Below the pieces are notes generated by a model. It saw nothing but the letters and a program-made list of their open reading frames with translations. It did no database searches and was not told the DNA's origin. Made by a program: the position numbers and the translations under genes. From Rhodosorus marinus CCMP1338 (taxonomy: Eukaryota > Plantae > Rhodophyta): a stretch of 64,000 bases of DNA. Numbering within the stretch: the stretch's first letter is position 1; every line of letters starts with the position of its first letter. The DNA is taken from positions 744,001 through 808,000 of the forward strand of contig JAMWBK010000004.1 in NCBI GenBank assembly GCA_029953675.1. Direction: 5' to 3'. This document shows, piece by piece, positions 598-62,998 of the stretch.

Positions 598-1998
598 TCA
601 CGGCAGGTCCAAGTAGCTGCAGGGTAGCTGGAACGGTGGAAATGCAGTCGCAGAGGCAATAAGCCCTACTAAGGCTCCATAGGCGCCAACAACACATATC
701 AAAACTGACAGGACGATCAAGAACGCGCAAGTCAGCTTCATGTAGATGCTCATTTCCTTGTTAAAAACAACCCAGTACGCGATGCATGGGAACAAGAACG
801 TCAGGATCGTGCTGCTGAAAGCTCCCGTCAGACCCACCAAGTCACCGATGAACGGGATGAGAAGCGCTAGGAACAGTTGCAGAGTCACGAGCGTCACCCT
901 GAGGAGTGTGCGGGTAACACCCGCTGGCATACCGTATGATATAGGTTTTCTCCAGCCGAGGAGTGGGATCTTCAGGATTGTTTGGATAGCCATCATCGAA
1001 ATAATGTTTCCGATGACGAGAGCTCCGAAGAAGGCGAGCAGCATGAGAACATTTCCGATGGTGACCGATACGTTCCAGGTAAAATTGTCGAAAATGTTGA
1101 GTTCTGCTTCAGTTCCGAACATGCCATAACCCAGGAACCCGACTACAATCATAGTAAATCCGAGCGTGGCGTAAGTCCAGTAAATCGACTGCTTGAACTT
1201 TTCTGGTTCTTTCATCTCCCTTCGGGCCTCTGGGAATATGGCATGACCTCCAAAAGCGAAACAGATTCCCGCGATTCCGTTGAAAACCGTGGTAACGTTT
1301 CCGATGTTGTAGCTGACCTCCTCAAGTCTTCCAGTGATGGCTATGTTCACCACGATCAGAACGAACAGCACCGTCATAGCAAACATACTGATTAGGTTAA
1401 CTCCGTAACTCTCATGGAACGTAGGCACCTGGGACAATACAACCGTGAATCCGTAGGAGATGACAATCCACCAGGTGTAGCACGGCTGAGGGAAGATCGC
1501 CTGGAAAAACTGGGCACAGAAACCCAGATTCGCCACGGAGATGAGAAAGTTTCCAATGGCTTGGGCAACCCATATTGTCCAGAAACCAGCTCGTCGCCCG
1601 TGTTTGCTCCCCTTGAAGAGCTTCGCGCCGACATACGCGCCCAAATCCGGATAACTCAGAATTTGTGGCTTACGTTCAGAAACTTTGTCCAGCATCAGAC
1701 CAGTGACAAGGCTGTGGGTCCAACCCCAAACCAGGACTACGACAGCCAGCACCCATCCCATGCCGGCGAAAAATCCGGGAACCATGAAGTAGTTGAGCGT
1801 CATCGCGGTAATCATAATGTAAGTTTTCCAAGGAGTAGATCGCCTCAATTTTTCTTCTTGTTCCTGCAGAAACGTATTAACACCTTCTGTGGCTTCTGCA
1901 CTACCATCCTTAATCGAAGTTTCCTCCGCATCATAGTCCGCATCGATATGCGGCTCCAGGTGCTCCGGATCCATGAAGTCCCGACCCATTTTTCCCAC
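598..1998 (-). CDS. Amino acid/auxin permease (AAAP, Aa_trans) family transporter, 466 aa, intronless
   Basis: Acidic N-terminal tail followed by about 11 hydrophobic segments. Motifs include SYPDLG, FAFGGHAIFPEARREMKEPEKF and LIPFIGDLVGLTGA. Confidence 0.92.
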   Translation of the reverse strand: MGKMGRDFMDPEHLEPHIDADYDAEETSIKDGSAEATEGVNTFLQEQEEKLRRSTPWKTYIMITAMTLNYFMVPGFFAGMGWVLAVVVLVWGWTHSLVTGLMLDKVSERKPQILSYPDLGAYVGAKLFKGSKHGRRAGFWTIWVAQAIGNFLISVANLGFCAQFFQAIFPQPCYTWWIVISYGFTVVLSQVPTFHESYGVNLISMFAMTVLFVLIVVNIAITGRLEEVSYNIGNVTTVFNGIAGICFAFGGHAIFPEARREMKEPEKFKQSIYWTYATLGFTMIVVGFLGYGMFGTEAELNIFDNFTWNVSVTIGNVLMLLAFFGALVIGNIISMMAIQTILKIPLLGWRKPISYGMPAGVTRTLLRVTLVTLQLFLALLIPFIGDLVGLTGAFSSTILTFLFPCIAYWVVFNKEMSIYMKLTCAFLIVLSVLICVVGAYGALVGLIASATAFPPFQLPCSYLDLP

Positions 1999-11468: not shown

Positions 11469-14400
11469 TGCCCCGCAGAAGAAGGAGTACTCAACGCCGC
11501 CCGAATGAACCCCTCTTCCACGCCAACCGACCGGCATGGATCCAACGTTGGACTGACTTTGTCAATGAGCTCACGGACAGTGGACGCCTGTGGACACGTC
11601 TAGCCCACTGCCCGGTCCGAACCCGCCGATTCATCCCCTCTGCCGCCGTCAACAAATGGAGCAGCCTCTTCAGTGCCGCCCTCCAGCTTGCTCGAGACGA
11701 CACAGCCCCCGAGGACGCGAGCCTTCTCATCATCGGACTTCCTGGTCTGATCCTGGGCTATACGCACTTTCCTATTGGCAAGCAGATCGATCACATCCTG
11801 GCTGGCGATTTTCATACCGTGTGGAACGCTCTAGAGGACTCTGCAGCGCAACCGAGGCCGGCTACACCACACAGAGGTCCTGACACTACCACACAATAAA
11901 CCCGCTGGCGGCGCAAACAAGCACTCAAGCTCGCCCAACAAGGTCGCCTCTCTGACGCTGCATACCGCCTCACAGCCTCTGCAATGGCCAAACAGAACGT
12001 TGCCACCTGGAACCAGCTCGAAGACCTCTTCCCGGACCCGACAGACACCCCCCTCTCTGAGGATCTACAGCAAACCCTGCAGACACTACTTGCACAGGAC
12101 AACGCCCAACTACGGGTTAGGTGGCTGGCCGGACAAGCCTCGGATGAGAGTCTACTCGCCAAACTGACCCTGCTGCCGAAAGACAAATGTCCAGGGCCCA
12201 GCGGGCTCCGCGCAGAGCACTTACAGATGCTAACGCGTGAGGCACACCCGCACCTGGTACGGTTCCTGAGACAGTTGGCCACGACTCCGGAGCGGCTCCC
12301 GGCAGTCCTGACCAGGGCTCTCCGCAGCAGCAGGCTCCTGCCGTTTGTCAAGTCCCCTACTACTGGGCCCCCACCTGCGCACCCTGCTGTCAGACCTATT
12401 GGCGTTCCTGAAGTCCTACGAAAGCTAGCGACACAGTGGGTACTAGGTCACCTGACCACCCGACTTCGGGAGCTCCTCGTCCCCCTGCAACTAGGCCTTG
12501 CCGTCAGTGGAGGTTGCGAACGGTCCCTGCACGCAATACAGGCCCATATCTACTGTGAACCACAATCGGCAGTTCTACGACTCGACCTGGCGAATGCGTT
12601 CAACCGAATTGATCGGAGTATTGCCAAACAACTAGTCGACCGCCATTACCCAGAGCTGGCAGCCATCTACCGCCTGGGATATGGAAGCAACTGCGAGGAC
12701 TCACCTACGCTCCTTGGCTGGCGCCCCAAAGCTACAGACGGAATACTGCATCCAGATCGACTACACCTACAAGCGCAGACGGGAGTACAACAAGGAGATC
12801 CTTTGGGACCTGCCTTACACGCCCTCTCACTGGCGCCTTTTCTCGAAGCACTGCGGCAGAAATACCCTGAGCTGACTACTGTCGCCATCCATGACGATAT
12901 CACGCTCGTGGGCCCCCTGGAGTCCCTGAAAGATGCCCTACTGTGGAGTCAAAATGCCCTCCCTACTATTGGGGCGGAACTACAGCCTCAAAAGTGCACC
13001 CTATTCGGCTACCACATAGCATCCCCTCGACTGGTTACCAGATACATGCCGGACCTCAATGTTTCTCGCGAAGGAGTAACCATACACTCCATTCCCATTG
13101 GCACGAGAAAATATGTGGAAGAAGCTTTGAGAACACTACAAAACAAGCATGAAACACTGGGCAAAGAGATAGCCCATCTGCCTCCTGAAGAGCTCAACAC
13201 ACAACTGGCGCTGTTCCGATACTGCTCGGAAACGAGACTTGACTACACCCTAAGGACAGTGGCTTACCACTACGGCAGAAGTTTAGCACGAGAAGCGGAC
13301 TACAACACACGACTACAGTTGGAAAGGCTACTAGGCTGTCTACAAACAGCCCATGCGGACGACCCTGACGGAACGCACCCGGCTTGGAAGCAGGTAGCAC
13401 TCCCCTGCCGATGGGGGGAACTGGGATTCTGCACTAGAAGGCGCATCTAACCTATTTCTTTCTACACAGGTTGGATGCAAACCTTTGCAGCTAACAAGGG
13501 CTATTGGCCCCACCTACAAAAATTGTTAGAACGCACGTAGGAGGAAGCTACACCACAGCTGCTCAACCCCCCGAGGACACTACACCGCTCTACTGACGAC
13601 CTCCCCTCCCAAATCCTAGTGGCAACTACAGCCATAAGGGGGAGACTGAGACCGGAAACCAGCCCCCGAATAAGGCAGCTCCTCAACCCCGCGTACCTGA
13701 CTGCTGCCCCTGCAGCAAATTCCCCCCCTGACCAGTCTGCGGTGAAGCAAGGTTCCTTACAACAGACCCTCTCAAGAGAGGCACACCTTTCTGCTTTCAC
13801 CCGAGTGGTCACGGATCCCTTACTCGACCCGGAACATCGTAACCATTCATTCAATCCGTTCCGCTGCAGGAGCAGGTTCAGGTGTCTGGCTAAGAGATTT
13901 GCCACAATTCGGACCCCGAAAATTGAGTGGGAGAGGCATGCACCTGAATATCCGACAATTGCTGGGACTCCCGATTCCGGGACTGCGGACGACGGAGAGG
14001 TGTACTACGTGTAATAGTACACACCGTACGAACGGTGTACAAAGATTCCATCATTGTCAGACCTCGACTGGGCTCTGGCAACGGCGACATGATGAGCTCT
14101 GCACTGAGCTGGCGCGCTGGCTTAACAGATGGCAGTTCAGAGATGTTCAGCAAGAACCTACAGACTACTTCACGAACTCGAATCTACGACCTGACTTGGT
14201 AGCTATACACCCTCGAACCTGGCAACGATTTGCGATCGATGTGACGGTGGTGTCACCCCTACAGGCGAGACACCTAGCCAACAGCAAAGACAACAATGAT
14301 TATGCAGCAAAACAGGCGGAGCGTTGGAAACTTGCACACTACAAGGAGGCGATGGCGACAGAGCATCCAGATGACAAACTGATTCCGATTGCGATAGAAA

Positions 14401-18517: not shown

Positions 18518-19918
18518 GTGGGGAGAATGGGTGGGGAGTCTATGGATCCGGAGCACATGGAGCCGCATATCGACGAGGACTATGATGCGGAGGAAACTGC
18601 AGTTAAGGATGCTAATGCAGAAGCCGCCGAAGGAGCGAATACGTTTCTTCACAAGCAAGAGCCAAAATTGAGGCGATCTTCTCCTTTCAAGACATATGTT
18701 CTAATTACCGTGGTGTCGCTCAGCTACAGCATGGTTCCCGGATTTTTCGCCGGCATGGGATGGGGGCTGGCTACCGCAATTCTGGTTTGGGGTTGGACTC
18801 ACAGCTTAATCACCGGTCTGATGCTGGACGAAATTTCTGAACACAAACCACAGATTCTGAGCTACCCGGACATGGGCGCATATGTCGGCGCGAAGCTATT
18901 CAATGGTAACAAGCACGGGCGACGAGCTGGTTTCTGGATAATATGGACTTCCCAAGCCATGGGAGCCTTTCTCATGTCCGTGGCGAGTCTGGCTTTCTGT
19001 GCCCAGTTTTTCCAGGCGATCTTCCCTCAGCTGTGCTATAACTGGTGGATTGTCATCTCCTACGGATTGGTCGTTTTATTTTGCCAGATACCCACATTCC
19101 ATGACAGTTTTGCAATTAACATAGTCAGTTGGACTGCTCTGGCGGTGCTGTTCATTCTGATAGTCGTAAACATATGCGTCACTGGAAGACTCGAGGAGGT
19201 CCGCTACAACATCGGGAACGTTACAACGGTTTTCAACGGAATCGCGGGAATCAGCTTCGCTTACGGAGGTCATGCCGTATTCCCAGAGGCCCGAAGGGAG
19301 ATGAAAGAGCCAAAAAAATTCCAGCAGTCGATTTACGGGCTGTACGCCACATTCGCAGTTGCTAATGTTGTGGTCGGGTTCCTGGGTTACGGGATGTTCG
19401 GAACCGAGGCAGACGTCAATATTTTCAACAATTTTACCTGGAACGTATCGGTCACCATCGGGAACGTTCTCATGTTGGTCGCCTTCTTCGGATCTCTTGT
19501 GATTGGAAACGTTCTTTCGATGATGGCTATCCAGACAGTGCTGAAGATCCCACTTATCGGCTGGAGAAAGCCAAAATCATACGGTATGCCAACCGGTGTT
19601 ACTCGGACACTCCTCAGGGTGGGGATGATAACGCTGCAACTGCTTCTAGCGCTTCTCATTCCGTTCATCGGCGACTTGGTGGGTCTGACAGGAGCTTTCG
19701 CGAGCACGATTCTGACGTTTATGTTCCCATGCCTCGCATACTGGGTTGTTTTCAACAAGGGAATGAGCATCTACATGAAGATGGTTTGCGCATTCTTGAT
19801 CGTCTTGTCAGTCCTGATTGGTGTTGCTGGCTCCTATGGAGCCCTGCTAGGGCTTATTTCCAATGCGACAGCATTTCCACCGCTCCACCTGCCCTGCAAC
19901 CACTTGGACCTGCCCTAA
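18518..19918 (+). CDS. AAAP/Aa_trans family transporter, 466 aa, paralog of 598-1998
   Basis: Same length and colinear with the first copy; motif FAYGGHAVFPEARREMKEPKKF. Confidence 0.92.
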   Translation: MGRMGGESMDPEHMEPHIDEDYDAEETAVKDANAEAAEGANTFLHKQEPKLRRSSPFKTYVLITVVSLSYSMVPGFFAGMGWGLATAILVWGWTHSLITGLMLDEISEHKPQILSYPDMGAYVGAKLFNGNKHGRRAGFWIIWTSQAMGAFLMSVASLAFCAQFFQAIFPQLCYNWWIVISYGLVVLFCQIPTFHDSFAINIVSWTALAVLFILIVVNICVTGRLEEVRYNIGNVTTVFNGIAGISFAYGGHAVFPEARREMKEPKKFQQSIYGLYATFAVANVVVGFLGYGMFGTEADVNIFNNFTWNVSVTIGNVLMLVAFFGSLVIGNVLSMMAIQTVLKIPLIGWRKPKSYGMPTGVTRTLLRVGMITLQLLLALLIPFIGDLVGLTGAFASTILTFMFPCLAYWVVFNKGMSIYMKMVCAFLIVLSVLIGVAGSYGALLGLISNATAFPPLHLPCNHLDLP

Positions 19919-27347: not shown

Positions 27348-27992
27348 TCAGAGCCAGGGTTTGGATTCAAATGATGTAGAAATGTTGGGTGCGTCAAATA
27401 AGGTAAATTCAAGTTGTTCAATGAGCTTTCGTCGCTCCCTGGATCTTCTCGCGGACTCTCTGTTCCTCAACTTGCGTTTGTAAAGTACAAGGTCTCTCTC
27501 CTCGGCGCTCATACTCTTCACCTTGTATGAGGTCGTTCCGCTAATGTCCGCTAGGAGCTCAGATGGGTACATCTGGGCTTCAATTGCCCTCTTTTTCCAT
27601 AGGGGCATCCCCTTCCTCCGCATCTTCTTTCCATTGGACTCTTCCCGAGCAAGATCGTTTTGGTTCATTGGCGCAGCAAGAACATCTCGAGATACAACTG
27701 GGTGCATGAAATGCTGCTCCTGTCCAGAAACATTTGACCGCATATCGAAGTCTTGACATGCCGACCGGCAGTCCTGTCCCAGACCATTGTCCAGACCGAA
27801 TTGTGATGCCAACAACGCATCCATCACATCCTGCTTGGGGTCCGAAGCCTTCTTGGCTGTGGCGGTGCCGCACAGTTCAACTACAAGCTGGCAAAAGCCA
27901 GGTATATCAGTCAACTGGCCTCCATCGTAGGCCTGCAGTCTCTCCTCAAATTCCAGCATAGTGGGATCCATCTCTCTCTGTACCTGTATCAT
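27348..27992 (-). CDS. bZIP-like transcription factor, 214 aa
   Basis: Basic region LYKRKLRNRESARRSRERRK. The zipper after it is very short (LIEQLEFTL). Confidence 0.78.
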   Translation of the reverse strand: MIQVQREMDPTMLEFEERLQAYDGGQLTDIPGFCQLVVELCGTATAKKASDPKQDVMDALLASQFGLDNGLGQDCRSACQDFDMRSNVSGQEQHFMHPVVSRDVLAAPMNQNDLAREESNGKKMRRKGMPLWKKRAIEAQMYPSELLADISGTTSYKVKSMSAEERDLVLYKRKLRNRESARRSRERRKLIEQLEFTLFDAPNISTSFESKPWL

Positions 27993-33500: not shown

Positions 33501-33664
33501 TCCGTTATAAGTTTAAGCATATGTGCTTTGCGAAATATTCGAGTATGACTCGGTGTAGGGCAATAGAAAAACCTGGAGCTCTTGAGCATGACTACGAATA
33601 CAGTGTTGTGGAATTTCGACTGAGCTGGTATCTGACCTCCTATTTTATTGATTTCGACTCTACT

Positions 33665-34605
33665 TTACATGCACATCAAACGGTTTTGTCCCTTTTCTAA
33701 CGCGATTTCTGCTGCTTCTACCTCCCTCTAGGTTTGTAAAACACCTCACTCCTTGAAGCAACAAACTCTTCCTGTTTTACACACTGCTTCACGTTGATGG
33801 AGGATTCCCGAGCGGTATTCCGGGCCTCCCGTATCGCACCGCGAACGAAGTACGAAGCAAAATACCCGTTGAACATTGTGTTCGCGGTGAAACCGGAAAA
33901 GTGTACAAGGTTTTCTGCGCTGGCGGCACTAGAGAGAGCTCAGAGTTGAGCTTCGCAGCTTGTTTCACCAGCATTTGTGCGTCATCAACCTGGTGCCTGG
34001 CTTGTTGTACGGCCATCCTAGCGACATCTGCCTGAGCGTTGCACTTACGCCCCTTATGCCTCCACATATGCTTCGTATTACATACCCAAGCGTTTTCGAG
34101 GTTTTCAACCGCGAGAACCATGCTTTTTCAGCGGCTCTCATCATCTCGAAAGCCTTCTCTTGAGCGTTTGGTTTGCGCGCCGCTTCTCCAGAACGCGAAC
34201 CGCAAGATTCCTCACCGTCATGCTGCGGAACTCCTCAGAATCTACGATGGCGCCCCTGGTGATCTGCTCCGAAACCCACCTCTTCTCGTGTTCCAGGGAT
34301 ACTCGATCCTCGTGTCGACGCTCGCTTCTTCGAAAGTGCGTCTAACACTCTCCGCGGCTTCTCGTACCAGCTTTAGCTCTTTGTCTATCGCCCTCAGTTC
34401 ATATACATCCGCCTTGTTGTTCAAGGTCCACTCCTCGACCTTGTCGACTTATACTTATCGTGCGAACAACCTTTTTAGAGCGCGGCTCTTCTCTTTTCTC
34501 AGCCGTGCTGAAGACAGGTCAGCCTTCCGCTGAGCTGCCATCCTCTGTATCTCCAACTTTTCCAATTTGTGGTATTGGTGCACAAGATGGCCTCCAACCC
34601 ACTCG
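33665..34605 (-). pseudogene. Pseudogene paralog of the coiled-coil genes at 38055 and 41444
   Basis: Fragments NKADVYELRAI, ERRHEDRVSLEHEK, LAVENLENAWVCNTK and MFNGYFASYFVRGAIREA fall in different frames. There are several frameshifts, one at an (ag)n run near 33930; the paralog-equivalent stop is at 33665. Confidence 0.85.
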
Positions 34606-34909
34606 TTTGTATGGGCTAATCAAGTTTGTCTAAAGAGAAAGGGTCACATTTTATATATAAAAAGAGTAATATCGCTATTTCTACTACTGTTTCAGGGTTG
34701 GATACTGGACTAAGGCTTTCGTTCCTTGACTTTGACAGCTTTGAATCGCTTTCATGTCCATCATGGAGGTCAGCCTCTGATATGTTACTAGGAAAGTGTT
34801 ATCCGGTCTACTCCATGCAAGCCCACCGAAAACTGGGTAGTGCTTTTAGTAAGACCGCCGAGCAGCAGCTCATCGACATTCAACATCCGATCAGATTTTC
34901 TCGGTTTAG

Positions 34910-37190: not shown

Positions 37191-38054
37191 CACCACCAAC
37201 ATGACGGGGCTTTTACTGGTGCAAACAGAGAGCTCGGCTCCCCAGGGGAGGTGCTGACTAGCGAAAGAATTCTTTGGTCATAGCTGGATTATGCTCACAT
37301 TATCACCTCTACCACGATTTTTTTAGGTCCGGAATAGGGCTTTTTACTGGACTTTACTAGAACGCTCCAAGATCTAAAGAAATCGCTAAAGAAATCGACC
37401 CTGGTGATCATGCCTCGGGCAACCGGACAAAACAGAACATACCTGTAAGTCGGCTTTCCAGAGGTGGAATGTATGGGACAGTCCATGCCCTATAATGGTG
37501 AAGTTGGGACGCTGTCACTGAGAGCGTTTTTGCGCTTTGAAAATAAGGGTAAGCGCAGCAGTAATTTTTCTCTCCTTACTCGGGGCTGGAATTGTGAGTG
37601 CTCGTTTGGTGGGGGGTGAAAATCAGCAAGAAGGCTACTTATAAAGGTTCAGTGTATACGGAGGCGCTTACAAACGCCGAGGCTTTGCATTCTGAGGTTT
37701 TTCATCGGGTTTTCCCTTAGTTTCAGACGCCCTTAGCTTCTTGGATAGCGCTTGGGAGTTCTGGGGGGTGTTTGGGTGCCTGACCCTGAACTCCCTCGTG
37801 CGCTTTCTCGACTGCATGCTTCCTTGAGTCTGACTGTATGGCGCTATAATGCTGCCTTAGTTCTGGAAGCGCTTTCTCGGCGCACTTTCTATTGTACCTC
37901 GTTCGGGGATCTCAACCTCCAATTGAATCTGTCTGATATGTTCAGTCAATATTCCGCTCATTTCGGTGGTGGTTGTGTTCTGGAAATGTGCAAAAGGAGC
38001 TCGGTTGTAGAAGAGCGTAGACACACGATTTCGGTCTAAGGATTTCAATTTAAT

Positions 38055-39086
38055 TTACATGAATATCAGTCGGACTTGTTCCTTTTCAAGAGCAGTTTCT
38101 GTTGCTTCCACCCCCTCCTCGGCGTTTTTAACATCTGCATGGGCCTGTGAAACTTTAAGCTCTTGCTGCTCTACCAATTGTTTCACTAGGGCGGAGGATC
38201 TTCGAGTAGTTTTCAGGGCCTCCTTTATTGAACCCCGTACAAAGTAAGCTCCATACCCGTCGAACATCGTACTTGATCTGAAACCGGAAAAGTCGCCAAG
38301 GTTTTCTGCGTCGACGGCACTGGAGAGCTCGGGATTGAGGTTGTCACATTGCCTCACCAACGTTTGCGCCTCATCAACTTGGCGTTTGGCATGTTGCACC
38401 GCCATCCTTGTTACATCCGCGTAGGCGTTGCGTCTGCGTCCTCTGCGCCTCCACACCTGCTTTGTGTTGCACACCCACGCGTTTTCAAGACTCTCAACCG
38501 CGATATCCAATATTTTTCCCGCTGATATCAACATCTCCAGCGCCTTCTCTTGAGACCATTGGTCTCTCTGACGCATCTCCAGGGCGTGGAGCGCAAGATT
38601 CCTCTCCATCGTGCAGCGGCCCTCCTCGGGGTCCCGTACGGTGACAGTGAAGATCTGCGCTAGAACCCGTTTCCTCTCATTTTCCAGGAATGTTCGATCT
38701 TCCTCTCGACGCTTCATATCTTCCAAACCGCGTCGAGCGTTATCCGTGGCTTCTCGTAGCAAATCCAGCTGTGTCTCTATCCCCCTCAGCTCACAAGCAT
38801 CAGCTTTGTTTTTCAAGGTCCACTCCTCGACAATGTCGTTGTATGATTCCCGTGCAAACAACTTCTTCAGTACGTAGCTCTTCTCTTGCCGCAACCTGTA
38901 GGATGACTGGTCAGCCTTCTGCTTTGCCGCCATCCTCTGTATCTCCAGCTTGTCGGACCTGTTGGTGTTGGTGCGGACGATGGCCTCCAACGCATTCCTT
39001 TTAGCTTTGTAGCCATCAAACTCCCTGAGTTTTTCTTTCAAGTCCAGGTACTCCTCCCGCATGTACTCAAGTTCAGACGAAGCCAT
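38055..39086 (-). CDS. Predicted coiled-coil protein of unknown function, intronless
   Basis: 344-codon open frame, E/K/R/Q/L/A-rich and colinear with 41444-42514. First ATG is at 39086. Confidence 0.8.
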   Translation of the reverse strand: MASSELEYMREEYLDLKEKLREFDGYKAKRNALEAIVRTNTNRSDKLEIQRMAAKQKADQSSYRLRQEKSYVLKKLFARESYNDIVEEWTLKNKADACELRGIETQLDLLREATDNARRGLEDMKRREEDRTFLENERKRVLAQIFTVTVRDPEEGRCTMERNLALHALEMRQRDQWSQEKALEMLISAGKILDIAVESLENAWVCNTKQVWRRRGRRRNAYADVTRMAVQHAKRQVDEAQTLVRQCDNLNPELSSAVDAENLGDFSGFRSSTMFDGYGAYFVRGSIKEALKTTRRSSALVKQLVEQQELKVSQAHADVKNAEEGVEATETALEKEQVRLIFM

Positions 39087-41443: not shown

Positions 41444-42514
41444 TCACCGGGGGAGTGAATCCCCCCTCCCAACTGTTTGCATAAATGCCACTCGGACCTG
41501 CTGATTTTCTAGAGCAGTTTCTGCTTTTTCTACCTCCTCCTCGGCCTCTTTGACATCTGTAACGCACTCTTGGACCAAAAGCTCTTGTTGCTTTACGCAC
41601 TTTTCCACGACGATGGACGATTGCCGGGTGGTTTTCAACGCCTCCTTGATCGCACGGCGTACACGGTAGGCACCATACCCGTCAAACTTAGCATTCGACT
41701 TGAAACCGGAAAAGTCACCAAGGCTATCTCCGCTGATGGTTTTTGATAGTTCAGAATTGAGTTTGGCAGCTTGTTTCGCCAACGCTTGAGCCTCCTCAAC
41801 CTGTCGCCTGGCTTGTTGCATGGCCATCCTCGCTACACTCGCGTCAGTCTTGTTGTACTTACGCCCTTCTGCGCTCTTTACCACCTGCTTCGTATTGCAC
41901 AGGAACGCGTTCTCAAGATTTTCAACCGCAAGACCCATGTTCTTCTCTGCCGATTTCATCTGCTCGAGTGCCTTCTCCTGAGAAGTTTGGTGGGTTCGCC
42001 GTCTCTCCAGGACATGTAGCGCAAGGTTCCTCTCCTTACTGCAACGGGTGACTTCAGAGTCTGCTGCGACAGCACTTAAACAGCGCTCCAAAACCTTTTT
42101 CTTCTCCATTTCTAGGAACAATCGGTCTTCGTTTCGAAGTCTCACATCTTCTAAACTCTTTCGAGCATTTTCCGCGGCCGCTCGCAGCGACTCGAGCCGT
42201 TCGTCTATTATGCTCAGCTCGTTCAAATCCAGCTTGTTCGTCAAGGTCCACTCTTCGACCTTCTCGTTGTATGGTCTTCGTACAAACACCTTCTTCGATG
42301 CGCGCTTCTTCTCCCTTACCAACCTTTCTGATGACTGGTCAGCCTTCTCCTGAGCCGCCTTCCTCCGCACCTCTAGTTTGTCCGATTTCTCAGCATTGGT
42401 CCTCATGATGGCCTCCAGCCCAGTCATTGAGCTTCTACAATCGTCATACCCCTTCAACTGTTCTTTAATGTCCAGGTACTGGTGTCTCATGTACTCAACT
42501 CGACCAGGTTCCAT
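41444..42514 (-). CDS. Predicted coiled-coil protein of unknown function, paralog of 38055-39086
   Basis: Shares AVENLENA, GDFSGF...FDGYGAY.VR..IKEALKTTR.SS with its paralog. First ATG is at 42514. Confidence 0.8.
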   Translation of the reverse strand: MEPGRVEYMRHQYLDIKEQLKGYDDCRSSMTGLEAIMRTNAEKSDKLEVRRKAAQEKADQSSERLVREKKRASKKVFVRRPYNEKVEEWTLTNKLDLNELSIIDERLESLRAAAENARKSLEDVRLRNEDRLFLEMEKKKVLERCLSAVAADSEVTRCSKERNLALHVLERRRTHQTSQEKALEQMKSAEKNMGLAVENLENAFLCNTKQVVKSAEGRKYNKTDASVARMAMQQARRQVEEAQALAKQAAKLNSELSKTISGDSLGDFSGFKSNAKFDGYGAYRVRRAIKEALKTTRQSSIVVEKCVKQQELLVQECVTDVKEAEEEVEKAETALENQQVRVAFMQTVGRGDSLPR

Positions 42515-45095: not shown

Positions 45096-46319
45096 AAAAC
45101 CACCTTTCCTATGTCCCTTTATAGATTTCCGAATCCACTACAGGCTATCGTAACCCCTGGCGTCCGCTATCTAAAATCTAAGAAACAACATCGGGATCCG
45201 TTCAACCTTCTCAACCCTTGTCCTTCCCCGCCTCCAGCTCCTGTCACCACAATTGCGCCCTCCCTTCCCATCCCTCCCATCCGACACATCCCACAAGAGT
45301 TGTAAGCAAAAACAAACAAATTCACGTTTCAAGAAGAATTACACCAATTCTCTTTTCGCAACTCCAAATTCAACAAAAAGCGGTAATTACGCTTTATTGA
45401 TTGAATATTCAGTCCAAAACTCTTGCAATTTTTTCTAGGAAAGTACGTCATTATTTAAGATGCAGTCCAAAGCGGATTTTTGTATTTCATAATTTTTAGA
45501 GCACTGCTTGTTCAGATTTACGAGGATCTTAAGTTCTATATTTAGAATATTCACGTAGAGCGTGTCCCATGTACTTTAAAAATGGTAGTGATGGCCACGT
45601 CAACAACACGTTTATTCAGAGCCTATTGGGGCAGCAGGTGTATTAAGATAAATTAGATACCTCCAAAAACAAAGATTGTAATTTGGAAGAAATTAGTTGA
45701 AGCTTAACATCAAATTTTTGCCCATTGTTTTTTCGCTTTAAAAAGCTAGCTTTGCCCCGTTCTTTTATAATGAATATTTTATCAAGGAAGTCGGCGAAGA
45801 TCCTCATAAAATGTTTCGAAAAAGGGAACAGACTTACATCAGTATATTCTGGTTCCAATTATCATATATTCGTTCAAGAGCGCAGATCTAAAGAGGGGGT
45901 AATTAACGGTTTATTTCCATGAAGATAATCGAATATATTACATAAAATAGAATAAAAGATTTTTACTCAAGGGGTATATGATTTTGATCGATATTGCGTT
46001 ACGATATTAAAAAACTGTATGAGGTTGAAGGATCTGTATCTCCCGTATAATTGTTTAGTAGTAATTTCTTTCCGTGTGTGTAAGCAATGTTAACTAGATA
46101 TGTTTTAGAATGAAATTATCAGAGTAACCCTGAAGTCGGAATTTTTTTCATTTGGTATTTGGGTTGAGTTGAGGAGAGTGGAGTTACGGACCTGAGGATA
46201 TAGGAGCAACGGGGGTGGGGTGGGGAAGGGGAAGGGTGAGGAGATTGATCGGGTATTGAAGATATACTGGGCGAGCAAGCTTGTTTTTTTTTGCTTTTGT
46301 ATTTTCTATTGAAGGAAAT

Positions 46320-47669
46320 ATGAAGAATTTTGGGATGGTTGGGATGGCGGTGGGTTGGGTAGTGGTTTTGTTGTTGCTGGGAGATGTGTTGGGGGTGAGG
46401 ATGCAGGGAGGGACGGCGGGAGCTGGCGTGTCGAGACAGGTGGGTTCGACGTGTCAGGCGGAGCTGTTGGCGTCTCAGTTCGTTCAATCATTTGCTGAGA
46501 AGTGCTACGATCTGCTCGATGGAAGCGACGTCGTGGGTCAGTTCTGTTCGTCAAATTTGGTGAAGGCAGGACTGAACTGCGCGAAGATCAAGTTCACTGT
46601 CAACGTCGGGAACCTTCGGAGCATTAAAGTCGGGATATACCAGGACTGCAACATGGTACCGAACAGCAATCAGGCCAAGTTTACACACACGCGAACGCTA
46701 ACTGGGACGGTGAAGTCAAAGTCAATGACCGTGTGTCCGGACGAGATTGGGTCCGGCTCTAACTGCTGTGATGCCAGTCAGTGCATGGTGGCCGAAGCCA
46801 GGTTCAGGAAGAACGGCGTGGAGAAGAAAATCAAGCCCGGAAACGGCTGCTTTAACGGTGGAAACGGCAACGGCAATGGTCGCATCTGTCCTCTTAAAAT
46901 GAACTGCGTGAACGTCATCAACGGAACGAATGGGGACGATAATCTTGTGGGGACCAAGTTCGTCGACTATATTTACGGTTTCAACGGTGACGATACTATC
47001 GATGCTCTGGGAGGCAATGATCGAATCTTCGGTGGCCTCGGAGATGACAATATCGAGGGTGGTAGTGGAAAGGACTACATTCGAGGTGACGATGGGAACG
47101 ACCACATCGATGGGGAGGACGGGAAGGACTATATATACGGTAACGGTGGTTACGATATCATTCGTGGTGGCTTTGGGAATGACGTTTTGGATGGAGGCAA
47201 CCAGAACGATCTCATACAGGGGGAAGAAGGTAATGATGATATCATGGGAGGGAATCAGAACGATACACTGGAGGGCGGTGATGGGGACGATAGGATCCGA
47301 GGTGGTAACGGCGACGACTTTATGTATGGTGGGGATGGAGCTGACAATCTCGGAGGGAACGACGGAAATGACGTAATCTATGCCGGGCGGGGTAACGATA
47401 TCCTCAACGGAATGGATGATAATGACTTCTTATACGGAGAAAAGGGCGATGATCGGATCCAAGGTGGACGCGGTGACGACACCCTGCGTGGCTATGACGG
47501 AGACAACTACGCTAACGGCGGAAGTGGTGACGATTACTTCAACTTTGGCGACGGAGACGATGAGATCCTCGGGGGTGCGGGCAATGACTTAATTGTGAGC
47601 GGCGGAGGGTTCGATGCTATTGATGCCGGAACAGGTAGTAATACGGTAGATGGCATACCAAACCTCTGA
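46320..47669 (+). CDS. Secreted protein: signal peptide, Cys-containing N-domain and 27 in-register RTX-type nonapeptides
   Basis: ATG at 46320 (MKNFGMVGMAVGWVVVLLLLGDVLG); nonapeptides from GTNGDDNLV to AGTGSNTVD counted by hand. Confidence 0.9.
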   Translation: MKNFGMVGMAVGWVVVLLLLGDVLGVRMQGGTAGAGVSRQVGSTCQAELLASQFVQSFAEKCYDLLDGSDVVGQFCSSNLVKAGLNCAKIKFTVNVGNLRSIKVGIYQDCNMVPNSNQAKFTHTRTLTGTVKSKSMTVCPDEIGSGSNCCDASQCMVAEARFRKNGVEKKIKPGNGCFNGGNGNGNGRICPLKMNCVNVINGTNGDDNLVGTKFVDYIYGFNGDDTIDALGGNDRIFGGLGDDNIEGGSGKDYIRGDDGNDHIDGEDGKDYIYGNGGYDIIRGGFGNDVLDGGNQNDLIQGEEGNDDIMGGNQNDTLEGGDGDDRIRGGNGDDFMYGGDGADNLGGNDGNDVIYAGRGNDILNGMDDNDFLYGEKGDDRIQGGRGDDTLRGYDGDNYANGGSGDDYFNFGDGDDEILGGAGNDLIVSGGGFDAIDAGTGSNTVDGIPNL

Positions 47670-49381: not shown

Positions 49382-51433
49382 TCACGGACGCGGGATTGGA
49401 GTCGGGTGAGGTCTAAGCTTTCCAGCGTCTATGTTCGCAGGGCAAGGTTTTCTGTTCTTCCGATTCCCCAGTACGCAACAGGAGGAATTAGAGCACTGGT
49501 CTATTTCAAGGACGACGGAGACAGACCATCCACCACTGTCTGGGTAGGAGACCGAGACCTTTGGGAACTGCCTTTTGACGATATCCTCAAGGTTGTAGTG
49601 GAAGATGAAAACGCCATAGTACTTGCCGTCGTCGAACTTTTTGTACCCACCGGCAACCTCGGCGCTGAACGACTCAGGCGGAACTCGGACATCGTTGACG
49701 AAGACGCTGGGCTTGTCTTCACTTCCATAAGCGCGAGAATGAGAAATACGAATCGCGACGACGCCACCAGGAGTGTTCGGGAGGTTTTCAAAGTAGTAGT
49801 GCACTTTCTTGTTCTTTTCAATGGGCGCGGGGAAGTCAGGCTTGTTGTTGTTGTGGTCTCTTACGTACGAAGCGTAGTGTCTCGACCTGTTCACTTTCCT
49901 CCGCTCACGAGATGGTTTGTCGAAGGCTACCTCAAACACTGTAGTCTCATAGGGGAAGAGGACCACCTGAGATGGGAGAAAGATTCTATCACCCTTCTTC
50001 TCCTGTCTAGAAACCGTCCACCACAAGTCACCGCCAACCAGGATGCTCTGAGCCCTCTCCTGTGGTGATAGCGGCTTCTTGTTTATTCGCAGTCGGCGTC
50101 GCTCGAACCATTTGAGCGGATCTCTGCCGTGCGGAAACAGCAAGTTCACCGTAGCTTCTGAGTCTATAAGGTTTTGCATTATAATATAGCCCTTGAATCT
50201 CGTCGAGACTGCGTTGACGCTGACCTGAACGTTGTTCGAGCTAGTGTAGATGAACTCGCCGTCCAAGCCCTTGAGAAGCTCAAAGTATTTCACCAAGTTC
50301 GTGAACTCGACATTTCCATTCCGTTTCTCATTAATAAGGCTCCATGGGTAGTGGTTTCCGTTGTCGATATCTCTCTGCTCCTGGGTTTCCATATTGATGA
50401 AGGTAATGACCTGGAGAACGTTATTGGGAATTCTCATTAGCATCATGAGCACCTTAAGAGCCTCGTTCATGATCGAAAAATCCCTGGAACTCAGGGGTGG
50501 AGCCGCCTCACGCCTGGCTCGACTGTACCAGTTGCTTATGTACTGCCCCATCTCACTGACGAGGTATGGTTGTGGCTTCCCATTCTCGCTGAGCCATGAA
50601 CTGTAGGTCTCTATTAGGTCCAAGTTGGCCTCAGCATAAGAGCCACCGATGTTATAGACGTGCTCAGAGATGAACTTTTGGCACCGCTTCTTTGCTGCGC
50701 CGTCGAGCCAGATCTTCATTCGCTTCTTGAACAGAGCAAAGTCCTTGAACGATGGCCTTACGAAAGCGGCTGCCGGTCCTCCCGTCAAAACCTTCTTCGA
50801 GTATCCCTCAAGCTCCTCGCAGAGCTCAGTACAGAGCTCGGTGATTCTCGCGACGAAGTCATCATGGCTCTCGTGCGCCTTCTTGAGCCTCGAGGCCTTT
50901 CCCATTGGTTCATTGAAGCACTCGTAGTAGGAGGGTAGAACATACTGATCATCGAAAAAGTACCTGAAGAAATTCCCAGCGTACGAGACTGCCTTTTCAC
51001 GCATGCTCTTGTTGCGAGTGATCCGCGGGATCATGAACGGATCGTCTGCAACCACCCGCTTTTCACTGAGGAATCTAAGCTGATAAGTGTTGCACCTCTT
51101 GCATTGTTTGTTATTGAGGTCCCTCTTTCCATCCTCCTCCACCAGAAATCTCGCCGCTCTCGTCGGGAATGTTCCCTCCTTGAACGGTCCCTTTGTAGAC
51201 CGGCTGAAAGAGACCTGCAGGACTGTAGTCAGGTAGTCCAACATGCGCTGAGGAACCACATCAGTATCTGGCTTGAACGTTCCGTGTCCATTCACATACT
51301 GCCTCCTCGAAAATACGTCCACGTTCCCAGTTCGCAGCGTACACCCAAAATCAGCCCTTACTGTAACGCTGTACGAAGTGACGCTCGATGTGGTCACAAG
51401 GACCACGAATACGGTCACCCAACATGCCTTCAT
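49382..51433 (-). CDS. GH86 beta-porphyranase/beta-agarase-like glycoside hydrolase with signal peptide, intronless
   Basis: Clan GH-A catalytic contexts YECFNEP and YLVSEMG. GGPAAA, F..RMKIWLDGA, GSYAEANLDLIETYS, FELLKGLDGE...SSN.QVSVNA and a C-terminal YPDSGGWSVSVVLEID parallel Bacteroides plebeius porphyranase A as I recall it (comparison from memory). Confidence 0.8.
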   Translation of the reverse strand: MKACWVTVFVVLVTTSSVTSYSVTVRADFGCTLRTGNVDVFSRRQYVNGHGTFKPDTDVVPQRMLDYLTTVLQVSFSRSTKGPFKEGTFPTRAARFLVEEDGKRDLNNKQCKRCNTYQLRFLSEKRVVADDPFMIPRITRNKSMREKAVSYAGNFFRYFFDDQYVLPSYYECFNEPMGKASRLKKAHESHDDFVARITELCTELCEELEGYSKKVLTGGPAAAFVRPSFKDFALFKKRMKIWLDGAAKKRCQKFISEHVYNIGGSYAEANLDLIETYSSWLSENGKPQPYLVSEMGQYISNWYSRARREAAPPLSSRDFSIMNEALKVLMMLMRIPNNVLQVITFINMETQEQRDIDNGNHYPWSLINEKRNGNVEFTNLVKYFELLKGLDGEFIYTSSNNVQVSVNAVSTRFKGYIIMQNLIDSEATVNLLFPHGRDPLKWFERRRLRINKKPLSPQERAQSILVGGDLWWTVSRQEKKGDRIFLPSQVVLFPYETTVFEVAFDKPSRERRKVNRSRHYASYVRDHNNNKPDFPAPIEKNKKVHYYFENLPNTPGGVVAIRISHSRAYGSEDKPSVFVNDVRVPPESFSAEVAGGYKKFDDGKYYGVFIFHYNLEDIVKRQFPKVSVSYPDSGGWSVSVVLEIDQCSNSSCCVLGNRKNRKPCPANIDAGKLRPHPTPIPRP

Positions 51434-58400: not shown

Positions 58401-59187
58401 TCTGTAATCCTCAACCTCACAGCCGCCGTCCTGACTAGAAATTTGGTGGGGGCCAAGGTACTGCCGTCTCTAAGAGCTGCCTGGCATGTGTCTAGGTAGT
58501 ATCTTCTTGAATATTGCAAGTAGTCGACCTAGCCGCAGAGGATTCGAGGCAATGACAAACAAAATAATTTTACTGTAGCAAACACAAGAGTTTCAACACA
58601 GATCCGCCTCCTAGTCTATCCATGAATCCGACTCGAAGAGGAAGGCTGCGTTGACGTCCTCTTCGAAGTTAGAGCTTTTTTATATCTCCATGGATGGAGG
58701 GAAGATTGCTCTCAGAATTTCCCTGCCTTAAAAGCGCTGTGCGACTCGGACAATGACTCCCCCTTGAGTTCCACGGAGACATAAAATACCTGTTACTTTA
58801 AAAACCAGCAGTTCCAGGTGGTTTTACTAGTCAAGGTGATTCTGCTAGAGAACCCTGACCAGGATGCTATCACAGCGCGCTGGCGCTCAAGCGAAGTATA
58901 TACAGAATCAGAGGCCCATGTCCTCCGCCGTCTCTATGCAAGCCAAAGACGAGAGAATGGAGCATTGACCTATTGTCTTTCCCTTACTTCTGTGCGCTAC
59001 AGGGCCTTAAACAAGTAGAGAAGGTAGTTGGGCCTCCTCATGTTTTCTTTTAGGGGGTTTTGTAGGAATCAGGCAAACTACTTGAGTTTGTCCGGGGGCT
59101 TACGGGGCCAATGCATTTTTAACTGAAAATCTCAACGCCGGTTTACCAACAAGATCTTGTAATCGGATCGCAACCCTTGTCACCACT

Positions 59188-62100
59188 TCAAGAGCAAATG
59201 CATTCAGTTGCATTGGGTCCAACTTCCTGTTCCCCGCCAACATGTAGAAAACCAATTATTTGTGAGCAAGCCGGGTCGCCTTCATCTCCTGCAAACCACA
59301 TACAACTTGATACAAAACTCACGGCTCCAGACGGGCAGTTTGCGGTTGCAAAGTCAACTATATTCACGCAGCGCTGAATAGACGAATCGCGACACTCTCC
59401 AGGATTGATGCAACTGCACTCGCAAGACTCCGACGGAACTCCAACCTAAAGCGCGAAAGGACGTGATCACAAAGGGATTCGGCAATGATTCAGATTGACA
59501 ATTTCCGAAAAAAAAGTCAGCCGTTGTCCGATCGGAGGCAAATGCAGATGAGATACAGGTTACGTACGCATGACGTCCCCGGAATAACAAAGTCGCCTGC
59601 GCTGTGGCAGTTCCCGTTGATAAGGCACTCGGAATTTGGGCAACAGTCGCACTTCCCGGTGCTCGGCCTTCGAAAAACCTACGGAACAGATTTTACAAAG
59701 GCATCCCCTCTGTTCAGCTAAACAACGACTGAGTAATCCGCAATTTCACCCGAGCTTCCTAACGTACGTTGCCTTCCGACCCACAGAAATCCGTCATGCC
59801 TAGGCCAACACATTCCGCAACTCCCCCATTCCCTGGGTCGAGGGCACATTGCTCCTCCAATGGAAGGCAATCACACGTGCATTCACCGGTCTCAGGTAGT
59901 CGAAACTGTTGAAAAGAAGCAAAAGAATGCAAGAACGTCCCTTCAATTACGATATGCTTCCTCATCTGCCAATCAAGTGCAAAATATCGCGCGCTAGGAC
60001 TCACGGCTCCAAATACACAAGCATTCTCAGTTGAATACGTCTGAGCGAGCTTGCACAATCCAGTAACGGGATCAACGCACTCGTCAACACCACAAGAGCA
60101 AATGCATTCAGTTGCATTGGGTCCAACTTCCTGTTCCCCGCCAACAAGTAGAAAACCAATTAAATGTGAGCAAGCCGGGTTGCCTTCATCTCCCGCAAAC
60201 CACATACAACTTGATACAAAACTCACGGCTCCAGACGGGCAGTTTGCGGTTGCAAAGTCAACTATATTCACGCAGCGCTGAATAGACGAATCGCGACACT
60301 CTCCAGGATTGATGCAACTGCACTCGCAAGACTCCGACGGAACTCCAACCTAAAGCGCGAAAGGACGTGATCACAAAGGGATTCGGCAATGATTCAGATT
60401 GACAATTTCCGAAAAAAAAGTCAGCCGTTGTCCGATCGGAGGCAAATGCAGATGAGATACAGGTTACGTACGCATGACGTCCCCGGAATAACAAAGTCGC
60501 CTGCGCTGTGGCAGTTCCCGTTGATAAGGCACTCGGAATTTGGGCAACAGTCGCACTTCCCGGTGCTCGGCCTTCGAAAAACCTACGGAACAGATTTTAC
60601 AAAGGCATCGCCTCTGTTCAGCTAAACAACGACTGAGTAATCCGCAGTTTCACCCGAGTTTTCTAACGTACGTTGCCCTCTGAACCACAGAAATCGTTCA
60701 TGGCTATGTCAACGCATTCCGCACCACCACCGTTCACTGGTTCAAGGGTGCATTTTTCCTCTACTGGAAGGCAATCACATGCGCATTCGCCGGTCTCAGG
60801 TACTAGGAACTGTTGAAAAGAAGCGAAAGCAGGGAAGAACGGCCAATCAGTTACGATGCGCGTCTCCTGCGGAACTTGGATCGAACCCGACCAAGTTTTA
60901 AATTGCTTGATAACATCCTTGGGAACAGGAACAGCGGAGTAGTCCAAGCGAAAAACAGGTACGAGCCTTCTAGAGAGAGGGAAACACTCACCGCAGAACC
61001 AAGGGGACAGTTTTCGGTTCCAAATTCTGAGATCGTTTTGCATCTCTTAACTCCGGATGCGTCGGTCGTCGAACAGTTGGGCGTGGTACAGCACTCGCAA
61101 ACACCGTCATCTCTCACGGTAGTGTTTCCGTCCTAGCAAGTCAGAATAACCCCAACAACAGACGTTTCAGTGCATGCGAGGCACACGCACGCAATAACAA
61201 ATACTTCAATTCTTAGAAAAGGTGATCAAACTTACGCAGCCAGTAACTAACGATTGATCTAGACAGACGCTCGAGTTCTCTGGGTCAATGCAACTGACCA
61301 AGGAGTCACAGCAGGCGCAGCTACCATCTTCCGCGATGTAGACCTATTGGAGTGGATTTAGATGCGCAATATTCAGTTCAGCACCGTGCCTTCCCGCCTT
61401 GGAACACGAAGAAGGGAAAGTAAGTAAAATGAGGACAACGCTCACAGCAGACGTAGGGGCACAATCAGAATAATCTGCCTTCGCAATACACCTAGGTACT
61501 CCTATTTCATCCGTGATCCTGCAGCTGTCCGGTGGGTTACAGCACTCGCAAAACCCTTCACTGTCTATACCAGCACTCTAATAGGACAAAACGACAATCT
61601 CTTTTCCGTCAGTAGCTAGTAGATAGGGCCACACGGATTCCTTTCCTCGACATAGGGCCATCGAGCTTACGCATCCTTTTTCACTTTCAAAAAACGATCT
61701 CGCTGCACAGAGGTTTTTTTCGGGTGGTCTAATGTCGGGTGGCAAGAAGCACGCAACGACTAAGCCACAACAGGCGCACCTGTAAAGCGGGGGAAGGGTT
61801 GTATACGGCTGCGAGGAGGTTCGAAAACATGCACCATTTAGCTACTGCATTCTGTTTCCAAATCAGATAAGGGTGAAAACAAATGCGAGCAGTTGCTCAC
61901 CGCCATATCGGGTCCATCGCACGTTTCAGCGTGCGGAGTACATATAGTCGGTGGTCCGTTCGTAGGCGTAAATAAGCAATTCGGTCCTTGTACGTCACAG
62001 CATTCGCATACGCTACTACTTCCCACCACGGCGCTCTAGAGCAAAAAACCAAAAACGTAGCAGCTTCTTTCTTTCAGCAGCATGACGGCTGTCATAGGCA

Positions 62101-62998
62101 GGCAAGTCCTTGCCAGCGTATGCATAAACTTACATCTAGACATCCACCCTCATCCCCATAGTCTGATGTAGACATACACCGGCTCAGGTCATCTGGGTCG
62201 AAACACTCATTTTCCGAGGCAAGGCAACAGGCACAGTTGTAGGATGTGTTGATATAGCCCTTTGGGTATAGCGGAGAATACACTCTTTAAGCGATGGAGC
62301 GAGATTCCGAGAAAAGCTGATATTCTCACCTCGGAGGTTTCAGCACATGTCGAGCTCCCGAAAGCTTCCGGGGAAAGACATTCTCCTCCAGACGCGCACA
62401 AGCCTGTGACGCAGCAGCTCTTTAGCATTTGGCATACTGTGATGTTGGGACCAGTGGCTTGCCTAATCACGCAGGCGCCATCTGGACCCGGATCCATTGG
62501 TTTCATCTCCGCCCTGATAGTGGTTGAATCTGGTCCTTCGATGATGGCATGGGCGATGATTGATAGAGACGGGACGTCACAGCACCCAAGCTCATTTGCT
62601 TGTATATCATTGGCGCAGAAGATAATGGACAGCTTTCGCACCTCAGTGTCCGCAGCAAGGCCCCTATTCGCCAAGTAATTGGTCTTGTTCTTCCGCTTTG
62701 GGTAATTCACTGGTATCGGAATGAGAGACTCCTCGGCGAAGATCCCCGCCCGTACCGATACCAGGTCAGCATCGTTCGACAAGAAGGTAATCCTCACACA
62801 GTTTTCCCCATCCCTCTCTTTGTTTCGAACCCGAACCTGACCAACAACTTCTCCATTGTACACGAGGTCTCGGTTAAAGCCCTCCACGAACTCCAGCGCT
62901 ATGGTGGTGTCAACGTCCGCGCAGGTGTTCGGACCGAACTGTGCCGCAACGAAGGCAGCAAACAGCGGCAACACGAGGATACTGAACACCAACCTCAT
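59188..62998 (-). CDS. 15-exon secreted protein (~785 aa): signal peptide, N-domain and tandem six-cysteine modules, one per exon
   Basis: Exons read by hand: 62998-62330, 62259-62134, 62035-61901, 61808-61671, 61577-61446, 61343-61236, 61132-60992, 60809-60672, 60582-60472, 60349-60227, 60130-60005, 59905-59768, 59678-59568, 59445-59323, 59226-59188 (TGA). All 14 introns are GT..AG, 70-182 nt and phase 0, and the spliced frame has no internal stop. Confidence 0.85.
59190..60830. repeat. Internal tandem duplication with 904-bp period inside the Cys-module gene
   Basis: 59190-59770 is almost identical to 60094-60674, introns included. The flanking exon pair 59905-59768 / 60809-60672 is visibly more diverged. 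Confidence 0.92.

Follow-up and report, generated by a model that had tools for sequence, protein, structure and literature searches.

The 64,000-nucleotide stretch of contig JAMWBK010000004.1 analysed here (assembly GCA_029953675.1), called the window throughout, comes from the unicellular red alga Rhodosorus marinus and carries on its minus strand the nuclear gene NDN08_002098, whose product is listed in GenBank as a hypothetical protein of 785 amino acids (aa). We found the locus to be an intact, annotated gene of 15 exons and 14 introns, and we consider it likely that it encodes an N-terminal head followed by a disulfide-rich stalk, the length of which was set in evolution by exon duplication. 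Our confidence is high for the gene, its family and its duplication history, and moderate for the register of the repeats and for their role as a stalk. Although the gene was already on record, both its repeat and its head are undescribed, being found neither in Pfam nor in the literature searched. The layout of the gene is classical: a secreted tandem cysteine repeat, one per symmetric exon, grown by exon duplication.

We rebuilt the gene model independently, starting at the ATG at 62998 and listing strong donors of the form GT[AG][AC]G together with in-frame acceptors, and this yielded a single consistent model. The spliced translation of 62998..59188 (minus strand) matches NDN08_002098 residue for residue. 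Since the GenBank annotation of the R. marinus genome was made by BRAKER, trained on RNA-seq (PMC10250338), an independent gene finder agrees with the rebuilt model and the gene observation is confirmed. All 14 introns are GT..AG, measure 70-182 nucleotides (nt) and use the donors GTGAG, GTAAG or GTACG, and their GC content is 0.42-0.49 as against 0.53 in the exons. Over 3.8 kb, the reading frame is unbroken, and none of the 92 cysteines or 28 splice sites is lost. The exons are as follows (all on the minus strand).

59188..62998, whole coding region: 15 exons, 14 introns, 785 aa, from the splice model and identity to NDN08_002098
62998-62330, exon 1: 669 nt
62259-62134, exon 2: 126 nt, phase 0-0, 6 Cys
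62035-61901, exon 3: 135 nt, phase 0-0, 6 Cys
61808-61671, exon 4: 138 nt, phase 0-0, 6 Cys
61577-61446, exon 5: 132 nt, phase 0-0, 6 Cys
61343-61236, exon 6: 108 nt, phase 0-0, 6 Cys
61132-60992, exon 7: 141 nt, phase 0-0, 6 Cys
60809-60672, exon 8: 138 nt, phase 0-0, 6 Cys
60582-60472, exon 9: 111 nt, phase 0-0, 6 Cys
60349-60227, exon 10: 123 nt, phase 0-0, 6 Cys
60130-60005, exon 11: 126 nt, phase 0-0, 6 Cys
59905-59768, exon 12: 138 nt, phase 0-0, 6 Cys
59678-59568, exon 13: 111 nt, phase 0-0, 6 Cys
59445-59323, exon 14: 123 nt, phase 0-0, 6 Cys
59226-59188, exon 15: short terminal exon

The preliminary description of this DNA had proposed a secreted, modular, cysteine-rich protein from a spliced gene with 13 internal exons of 108-141 nt, each of phase 0-0 and with exactly six cysteines. 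The signal-type leader, the spliced model and the cysteine repeats support the former, and the rebuilt model, with its identity to the GenBank protein, bears out the latter in every detail. Two remarks on the gene's surroundings need qualification. The other genes of the window had been called intronless, which holds for the three annotated neighbours checked (683, 422 and 356 aa, with a gene range of 3 x (aa+1) in each case); the genome as a whole, however, has 24,821 introns in 8392 genes, or about three per gene (PMC10250338), so that the 14 introns of NDN08_002098 are a high number but not an exceptional one. The track of open reading frames (ORFs) was said to miss the gene almost entirely, yet exon 1 is listed there as a 263-aa ORF. 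Introns 10, 11 and 14 (60226-60131, 60004-59906 and 59322-59227; 96, 99 and 96 nt) are multiples of three without an in-frame stop; each, if retained, would lengthen the protein by 32-33 residues without a frameshift, and an open frame of 194 aa, from 60349 to 59768, spans introns 10 and 11.

The cysteine pattern of the internal exons, C-x-C-(x)-C-x4-6-C-x5-13-C-x6-12-C, was found 13 times when the 64 kb were translated in all six frames, always in NDN08_002098, and not once in 20 shuffles of the window. The repeat also has a conserved [DE]-[FY] and many hydrophobic residues. Its non-cysteine positions vary widely, with a mean column identity of 28-30%; the modules had been portrayed as widely different for this reason, a view that stands except that only 11 of the 13 sequences are distinct, exons 13 and 14 repeating exons 9 and 10. 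As had also been suggested, the module is unmatched to known domains: hmmscan of the 785-aa protein against Pfam-A and a search of PDB sequences with the module profile each gave nothing at E<=10 (E, expect value). A module-profile search of a set of 5.8 billion proteins let six candidates past the word index, none of which scored, a weak negative; a stronger one came from index-free phmmer over 1.84 billion representatives, which returned no protein with the modules but without the head. Tandem Repeats Finder, run on the window, reported nothing for the array, the units having diverged too far and the most recent copy having too long a period. Literature searches on Rhodosorus and on red-algal cysteine-rich repeat proteins brought up no account of this family.

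Exon 1 encodes everything that precedes the regular exon series, and its product can be divided into three parts (all on the minus strand).

62939..62998, predicted signal peptide, aa 1-20 (MRLVFSILVLPLFAAFVAAQ), from reading of the sequence
62414..62938, head domain, aa 21-195: 8-Cys beta-sandwich with last strand ..GPNITVC-x5-C, from phmmer, profile search and AlphaFold2
62330..62413, end of exon 1, aa 196-223 (CVTGLCASGGECLSPEAFGSSTCAETSE): first four cysteines of repeat unit 1

The leader (M-R with its single Arg, a hydrophobic run of 17 residues, then VAA|Q) reads as a signal peptide, and UniProt names the paralogues P0004 and P0011 'Secreted protein'. The protein has eight N-x-S/T sequons and a cysteine content of 11.7%, rising to about 15% in the repeat region. 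Together with a total cysteine number that follows 8+6n (see below), leader and sequons argue for a secreted, fully oxidised glycoprotein; judged by its sequence, NDN08_002098 would thus be secreted, N-glycosylated and fully disulfide-bonded. AlphaFold2 models the head as an all-beta sandwich with a predicted local distance difference test score (pLDDT) of 82 and a predicted template-modelling score (pTM) of 0.78. When compared with the PDB by Foldseek, this model brought up ApaG, NPC2, Asf1 and SOD-like folds, none of which we accept as a functional lead.

The head also defines a family. In the labelling used here, P0001 is NDN08_002098, while P0002-P0011 are Rhodosorus paralogues and MMETSP0315 transcripts, all of them unnamed hypothetical proteins. 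The index-free phmmer search found five relatives, all from R. marinus and all matched through the head (E 1e-22 to 4e-33), and a head profile search added four more, again all from R. marinus; the sources are the genome or the MMETSP0315 transcripts. Head identity among relatives is 34-45%, with the motifs LVS[IV]R[AG]GIF, P.PV.Y..R.N, GCC and VC-x5-C, all of which NDN08_002098 shares; a local hidden Markov model (HMM) of the head alignment A2 scores its exon 1 at E 9e-88. Altogether, the family comprises about ten proteins in which this common head is followed by 0, 2, 3 or 14 repeats or by RTX calcium-binding repeats. Five relatives of about 200 aa consist of leader and head alone, NDN08_004880 and NDN08_002776 have the head and three repeats, and in P0007, known from a transcript, the head is followed by two repeats, a C-A-C stub and, last, RTX repeats (Pfam PF00353, E 2.5e-48), the only Pfam match among the six relatives searched. 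RTX nonapeptide repeats of the type GGxGxDxUx are absent from NDN08_002098 in the Pfam-A hmmscan. The other genomic relatives are NDN08_004058 and NDN08_000281.

The exon structure is shared as well. In NDN08_004880 and NDN08_002776, exon 1 again encodes the head plus the first four repeat cysteines. Later repeats occupy one phase-0 exon each (150/168 nt and 147/165 nt), and the introns between them, with donors GTGAG and GTACG, measure about 97 nt. One repeat per phase-0 exon, in an array that ends in a C-x-C stub, is a family trait, and NDN08_002098 displays it. Furthermore, the MMETSP proteins demonstrate an uninterrupted run of repeats in the mRNA, at least in the case of paralogues. Within the window itself, the intronless gene at 46317-47669 (plus strand; GenBank 46401-47669, 422 aa) is a distant copy of the head (hhalign probability 88.9%, E 2.4e-6; local HMM E 6e-6) fused directly to RTX repeats (PF00353, E 1e-49); an in-frame ATG at 46317, upstream of the annotated start, would add a signal-type leader (MKNFGMVGMAVGWVVVLLLLGDVLG). 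The architecture of head plus RTX is thus supported by two cases, P0007 and this gene. Finally, P0005 (NDN08_000281, 126 aa; L003 5757-6378, contig JAMWBK010000013.1) covers only the C-terminal two thirds of the head; the N-terminal rest (HMM positions 1-47) is encoded immediately upstream but in a different frame, as in a frameshifted pseudogene or a mis-called gene.

Comparison across the family allows the cysteines to be assigned. Five head-only paralogues stop 3-4 residues past VC-x5-C, and in NDN08_002098 both cysteines of this motif fall in the last strand of the AlphaFold head sandwich, from which it follows that the head owns eight cysteines. Downstream of the eighth, the tail can be divided into exactly 14 units, each C-x4-6-C-x5-13-C-x6-12-C-x7-16-C-x-C, which abut at 0-1 residues and leave a single Ser over. 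The number of cysteines after VC is 1+6n in all four complete long members (85, 19, 19 and 13), the total is 8+6n in every complete family member, and a C-x-C stub closes the array in every complete long member, with RTX repeats coming next in P0007. In the exon register, module 1 would have to borrow two cysteines from the head, and two would be left unpaired at the C-terminus. On the strength of this bookkeeping, the folding unit probably extends from the third cysteine of one exon to the C-x-C of the next, two cysteines out of the exon register. Such an offset explains the terminal C-x-C stub of every long paralogue, and it would place the introns in the longest and most variable loop of each unit. 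It also means that an exon is probably no autonomous fold, while skipping or duplicating an exon would still keep the cysteine pattern. The earlier statement that each exon is an exact module is accordingly valid for the sequence period but probably not for the fold. One long member departs from the 1+6n rule: the MMETSP transcript product P0002 (287 aa) has 11 cysteines after VC and none in its last 29 residues, and looks like a read-through into an unspliced intron past the sixth cysteine of the second exon-register module.

The history of the array is written in its spacing. The distances from acceptor to acceptor are 224, 227, 231, 234, 211, 323, 227, 233, 219, 225, 227, 233 and 219 bp, so that 12 of the 13 fall within 211-234 bp. 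A single unit of exon plus intron, about 227 bp long, was duplicated in tandem again and again to give the array, and the common 0-0 phase was inherited from this one founding unit instead of reflecting 13 independent coincidences. The latest enlargement is visible in blastn as two segments, 60857-60083 and 59953-59179, which align without gaps over 775 bp at 93.8% identity and an offset of 904 bp. The features concerned are (minus strand throughout):

60083..60857, copy A of the duplicated block: exons 8-10 with their introns, preceded by the 3' end of intron 7 and followed by the first 48 nt of exon 11
59179..59953, copy B of this block: exons 12-14 plus terminal exon 59226-59188
59104..59187, decayed remnant of the copy that resembles exon 11, past the stop codon; relic donor GTAAG at 59103

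The differences between the two copies are unevenly spread. Exons 9 and 10 match exons 13 and 14 nucleotide for nucleotide and, with the equally identical intron 9/13 between them, make up a core of 356 bp without differences. The adjoining introns and exon 11/15 differ by 4-6%, and exon 8/12 and the intron upstream of it by 17-20%. Exon 12 is a copy of exon 8 with 72% identity. This mosaic fits an older duplication of four exons, over part of which a more recent gene-conversion tract may have passed. The terminal exon copies the start of exon 11 and is ended by a TGA (EVGPNATECICS, then stop) where exon 11 has its third cysteine; beyond it, the translation continues as ..CS-stop-SGDKGCDPITRSC, compared with ..CSCGVDECVDPVTGLC in exon 11. 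Exons 8 and 12 have all six cysteines in common and differ with a rate of non-synonymous change (dN) of 0.14 and of synonymous change (dS) of 0.72, i.e. a dN/dS of about 0.19, which indicates that both copies are under purifying selection. Between paralogues, the modules (69% identity) diverge slightly faster than the head (79%). A matrix of pairwise non-cysteine identities between modules was too noisy to give the order of duplication, save for the pair of exons 8 and 12.

With this in mind, a constant head combined with a variable C-terminal part suggests that it is the head that does the work, with the repeats as an appendage of adjustable length. Tandem duplication of the founding unit built the array, and its remodelling is still going on, the four-exon block having been duplicated, partly homogenised by gene conversion and, in its last copy, cut by a stop codon. 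We propose that the repeats make a stalk or spacer, stiffened by disulfide staples, which keeps the head off the cell surface or cross-links it into wall or mucilage. Paralogues would then vary chiefly in the length of this stalk (0, 2, 3 or 14 units) or have exchanged it for an RTX calcium-binding beta-roll, and this length would be adjusted by duplication and loss of exons and not by regulated splicing.

Several observations count against this proposal. The role of the repeats as a stalk is argued solely from analogy. NDN08_002098 lacks a transmembrane segment, and its C-terminus is not hydrophobic, as a glycosylphosphatidylinositol signal requires, so that, in the absence of an anchor, attachment to the surface is conjecture. 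AlphaFold2 gave a poor model of a single module (from a 12-row module alignment), with a pLDDT of 61 and one short hairpin, and Foldseek with that model reached a meaningless best E of 3.7. For the head, the Foldseek matches in the PDB are generic immunoglobulin-like sandwiches only, with a best E of 0.015 and template-modelling scores of at most 0.32. Finally, no MMETSP protein was found within 90% identity of NDN08_002098.

A variant of the same idea goes further and takes the six-cysteine unit, straddling the exon junctions, as a new disulfide-rich fold, stacked into a continuous rod whose length Rhodosorus tunes quickly by duplication, conversion and possibly exon skipping; we regard this as unlikely. 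If true, the head with its variable stalk, together with the RTX variants, would amount to a lineage-specific extracellular toolkit for adhesion or matrix formation, of de novo origin in a red alga poor in genes. Extracellular proteins are little known in red algae, a group with few introns and small gene sets. The preliminary description had instead favoured a combinatorial cassette array, in which alternative splicing of the 13 symmetric exons yields many isoforms of a surface or defence protein. The exon duplication that it invoked is borne out, whereas diversification by splicing found no support and strikes us as improbable. Any subset of exons would keep both frame and cysteine pattern, also in the offset register, and three introns could be retained in frame; the phase symmetry, however, is explained by descent from one duplicated unit, and every exon is used in the annotated model. 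Moreover, the exons are unequal in length (108-141 nt), self-comparison of the region revealed nothing beyond the 775-bp duplication, and so none of the common selector or docking elements that a Dscam-type array would have in its introns, the duplicated exons are under purifying and not diversifying selection, and two exon pairs are identical and hence add no diversity.

A secreted tandem array of cysteine-rich units of about 4 kDa with variable loops also calls to mind a granulin-like polyprotein precursor, cut between the repeats into some 14 disulfide-rich peptides with an antimicrobial, inhibitory or signalling role. Yet there is no dibasic or other recurrent cleavage motif between units, these abut in the likely register without a linker to cut, and paralogues with 0, 2 or 3 units or an RTX tail suggest that the units are an appendage of the head and not the payload, which makes this reading still less probable than splicing diversification. 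We rate marginally lower the possibility that the C-x-C-C clusters bind metal in an extracellular, metallothionein-like protein that sequesters or senses it, instead of forming a disulfide scaffold. C-x-C and CC motifs are typical of metallothioneins, and the repeat region is indeed rich in cysteine; but the leader and eight sequons point to the oxidising secretory pathway, a total of exactly 8+6n cysteines in every complete member is what full pairing predicts, and the conserved [DE]-[FY] and the many hydrophobic residues are unlike metallothioneins, to which Pfam returned no match. Membership of that class was rejected on the hydrophobic leader, the overall cysteine content (against about 30% in metallothioneins), the sequons, the aromatic residues, the cysteine count and the lack of a profile match. 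Least probable of all is a decaying or mis-predicted locus, that is, a pseudogene or an ab initio model without product. It would agree with the lack of gene-specific transcripts in the protein collections and with a 3' end that is a truncated module copy followed by decayed sequence, but hardly with cysteines, splice sites and frame all intact, with a dN/dS of 0.19 between diverged duplicates, or with paralogues of the same layout that are present as MMETSP transcripts.

Among known systems, the head and disulfide stalk proposed here invite comparison with arrays of epidermal growth factor (EGF) and laminin-type EGF modules, as in fibrillin, Notch, tenascin and laminin. These, too, are long, secreted head-to-tail arrays of six-cysteine units of about 40 residues, with one repeat per exon of symmetric phase, growth by tandem exon duplication and a role as rod or spacer; in tenascin and laminin, EGF-like units abut almost directly and act as spacers. 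The animal modules, however, are typically of phase 1-1 and those of Rhodosorus of phase 0-0, and the present repeats belong to a red-algal lineage, with relatives within one species or genus only. The cysteine spacing differs as well: here the next cysteine follows C-x-C after 0-1 residues in either register, whereas in EGF about eight residues separate C4-x-C5 from C6. The EGF topology has disulfides 1-3, 2-4 and 5-6 around a core of a two-stranded beta-hairpin. Membership of EGF-type profiles was rejected on the Pfam-A and PDB searches described above, and a rotated EGF register because no rotation places about eight residues and then a cysteine after C-x-C. Progranulin resembles NDN08_002098 as a secreted chain of cysteine-rich modules with adjacent cysteine pairs, but granulin has 12 cysteines with four CC pairs, compared with six cysteines per period here, and Pfam gave no granulin match. 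The exons of GRN are out of register with the granulin modules, each carrying parts of two, which may serve as a lead for the offset seen here.

As such, NDN08_002098 offers a clean and datable case of a matrix-type protein built in a red alga by a mechanism known from animal textbooks, the duplication of symmetric cysteine-repeat exons. It also illustrates that 'one exon, one module', as read from sequence periodicity, need not equal one exon, one fold. The practical value is otherwise limited: some ten hypothetical proteins can be annotated better, and two candidates for new Pfam families emerge.

Elsewhere in the window, an intronless 683-aa gene with a signal-type leader (49382-51433, minus strand) lies near the two head-domain genes; its weak match to the porphyranase beta-sandwich (PF18206, E 2.4e-5) is below the Pfam cut-off, and it may be related to the cell wall. 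Two ORFs of 466 aa at 598-1998 (minus strand) and 18518-19918 (plus strand) encode amino-acid transporters (Pfam Aa_trans, E 1e-42 and 2e-38) and form an inverted pair (84% DNA identity over 1.6 kb, 77% for protein) that flanks a retroelement-bearing block. Within it, the GC-rich (0.56-0.61) and strongly skewed segment 9840-13450 (plus strand) is probably a retroelement, with a 488-aa ORF that matches RVT_1 (E 8e-10) and a 542-aa ORF without Pfam match, neither of them recorded as a called gene product; exact look-ups of the window ORFs 11984-13450 and 27348-27992 returned no gene product on record. Three segments of about 1 kb (33650-34608, 38041-39070 and 41476-42498), 71-72% identical to one another, look like a small local gene family, and two of them coincide with ORFs or genes of 344-364 aa without Pfam match. 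Dispersed repeats of 200-960 bp and 75-98% identity are numerous in the window.

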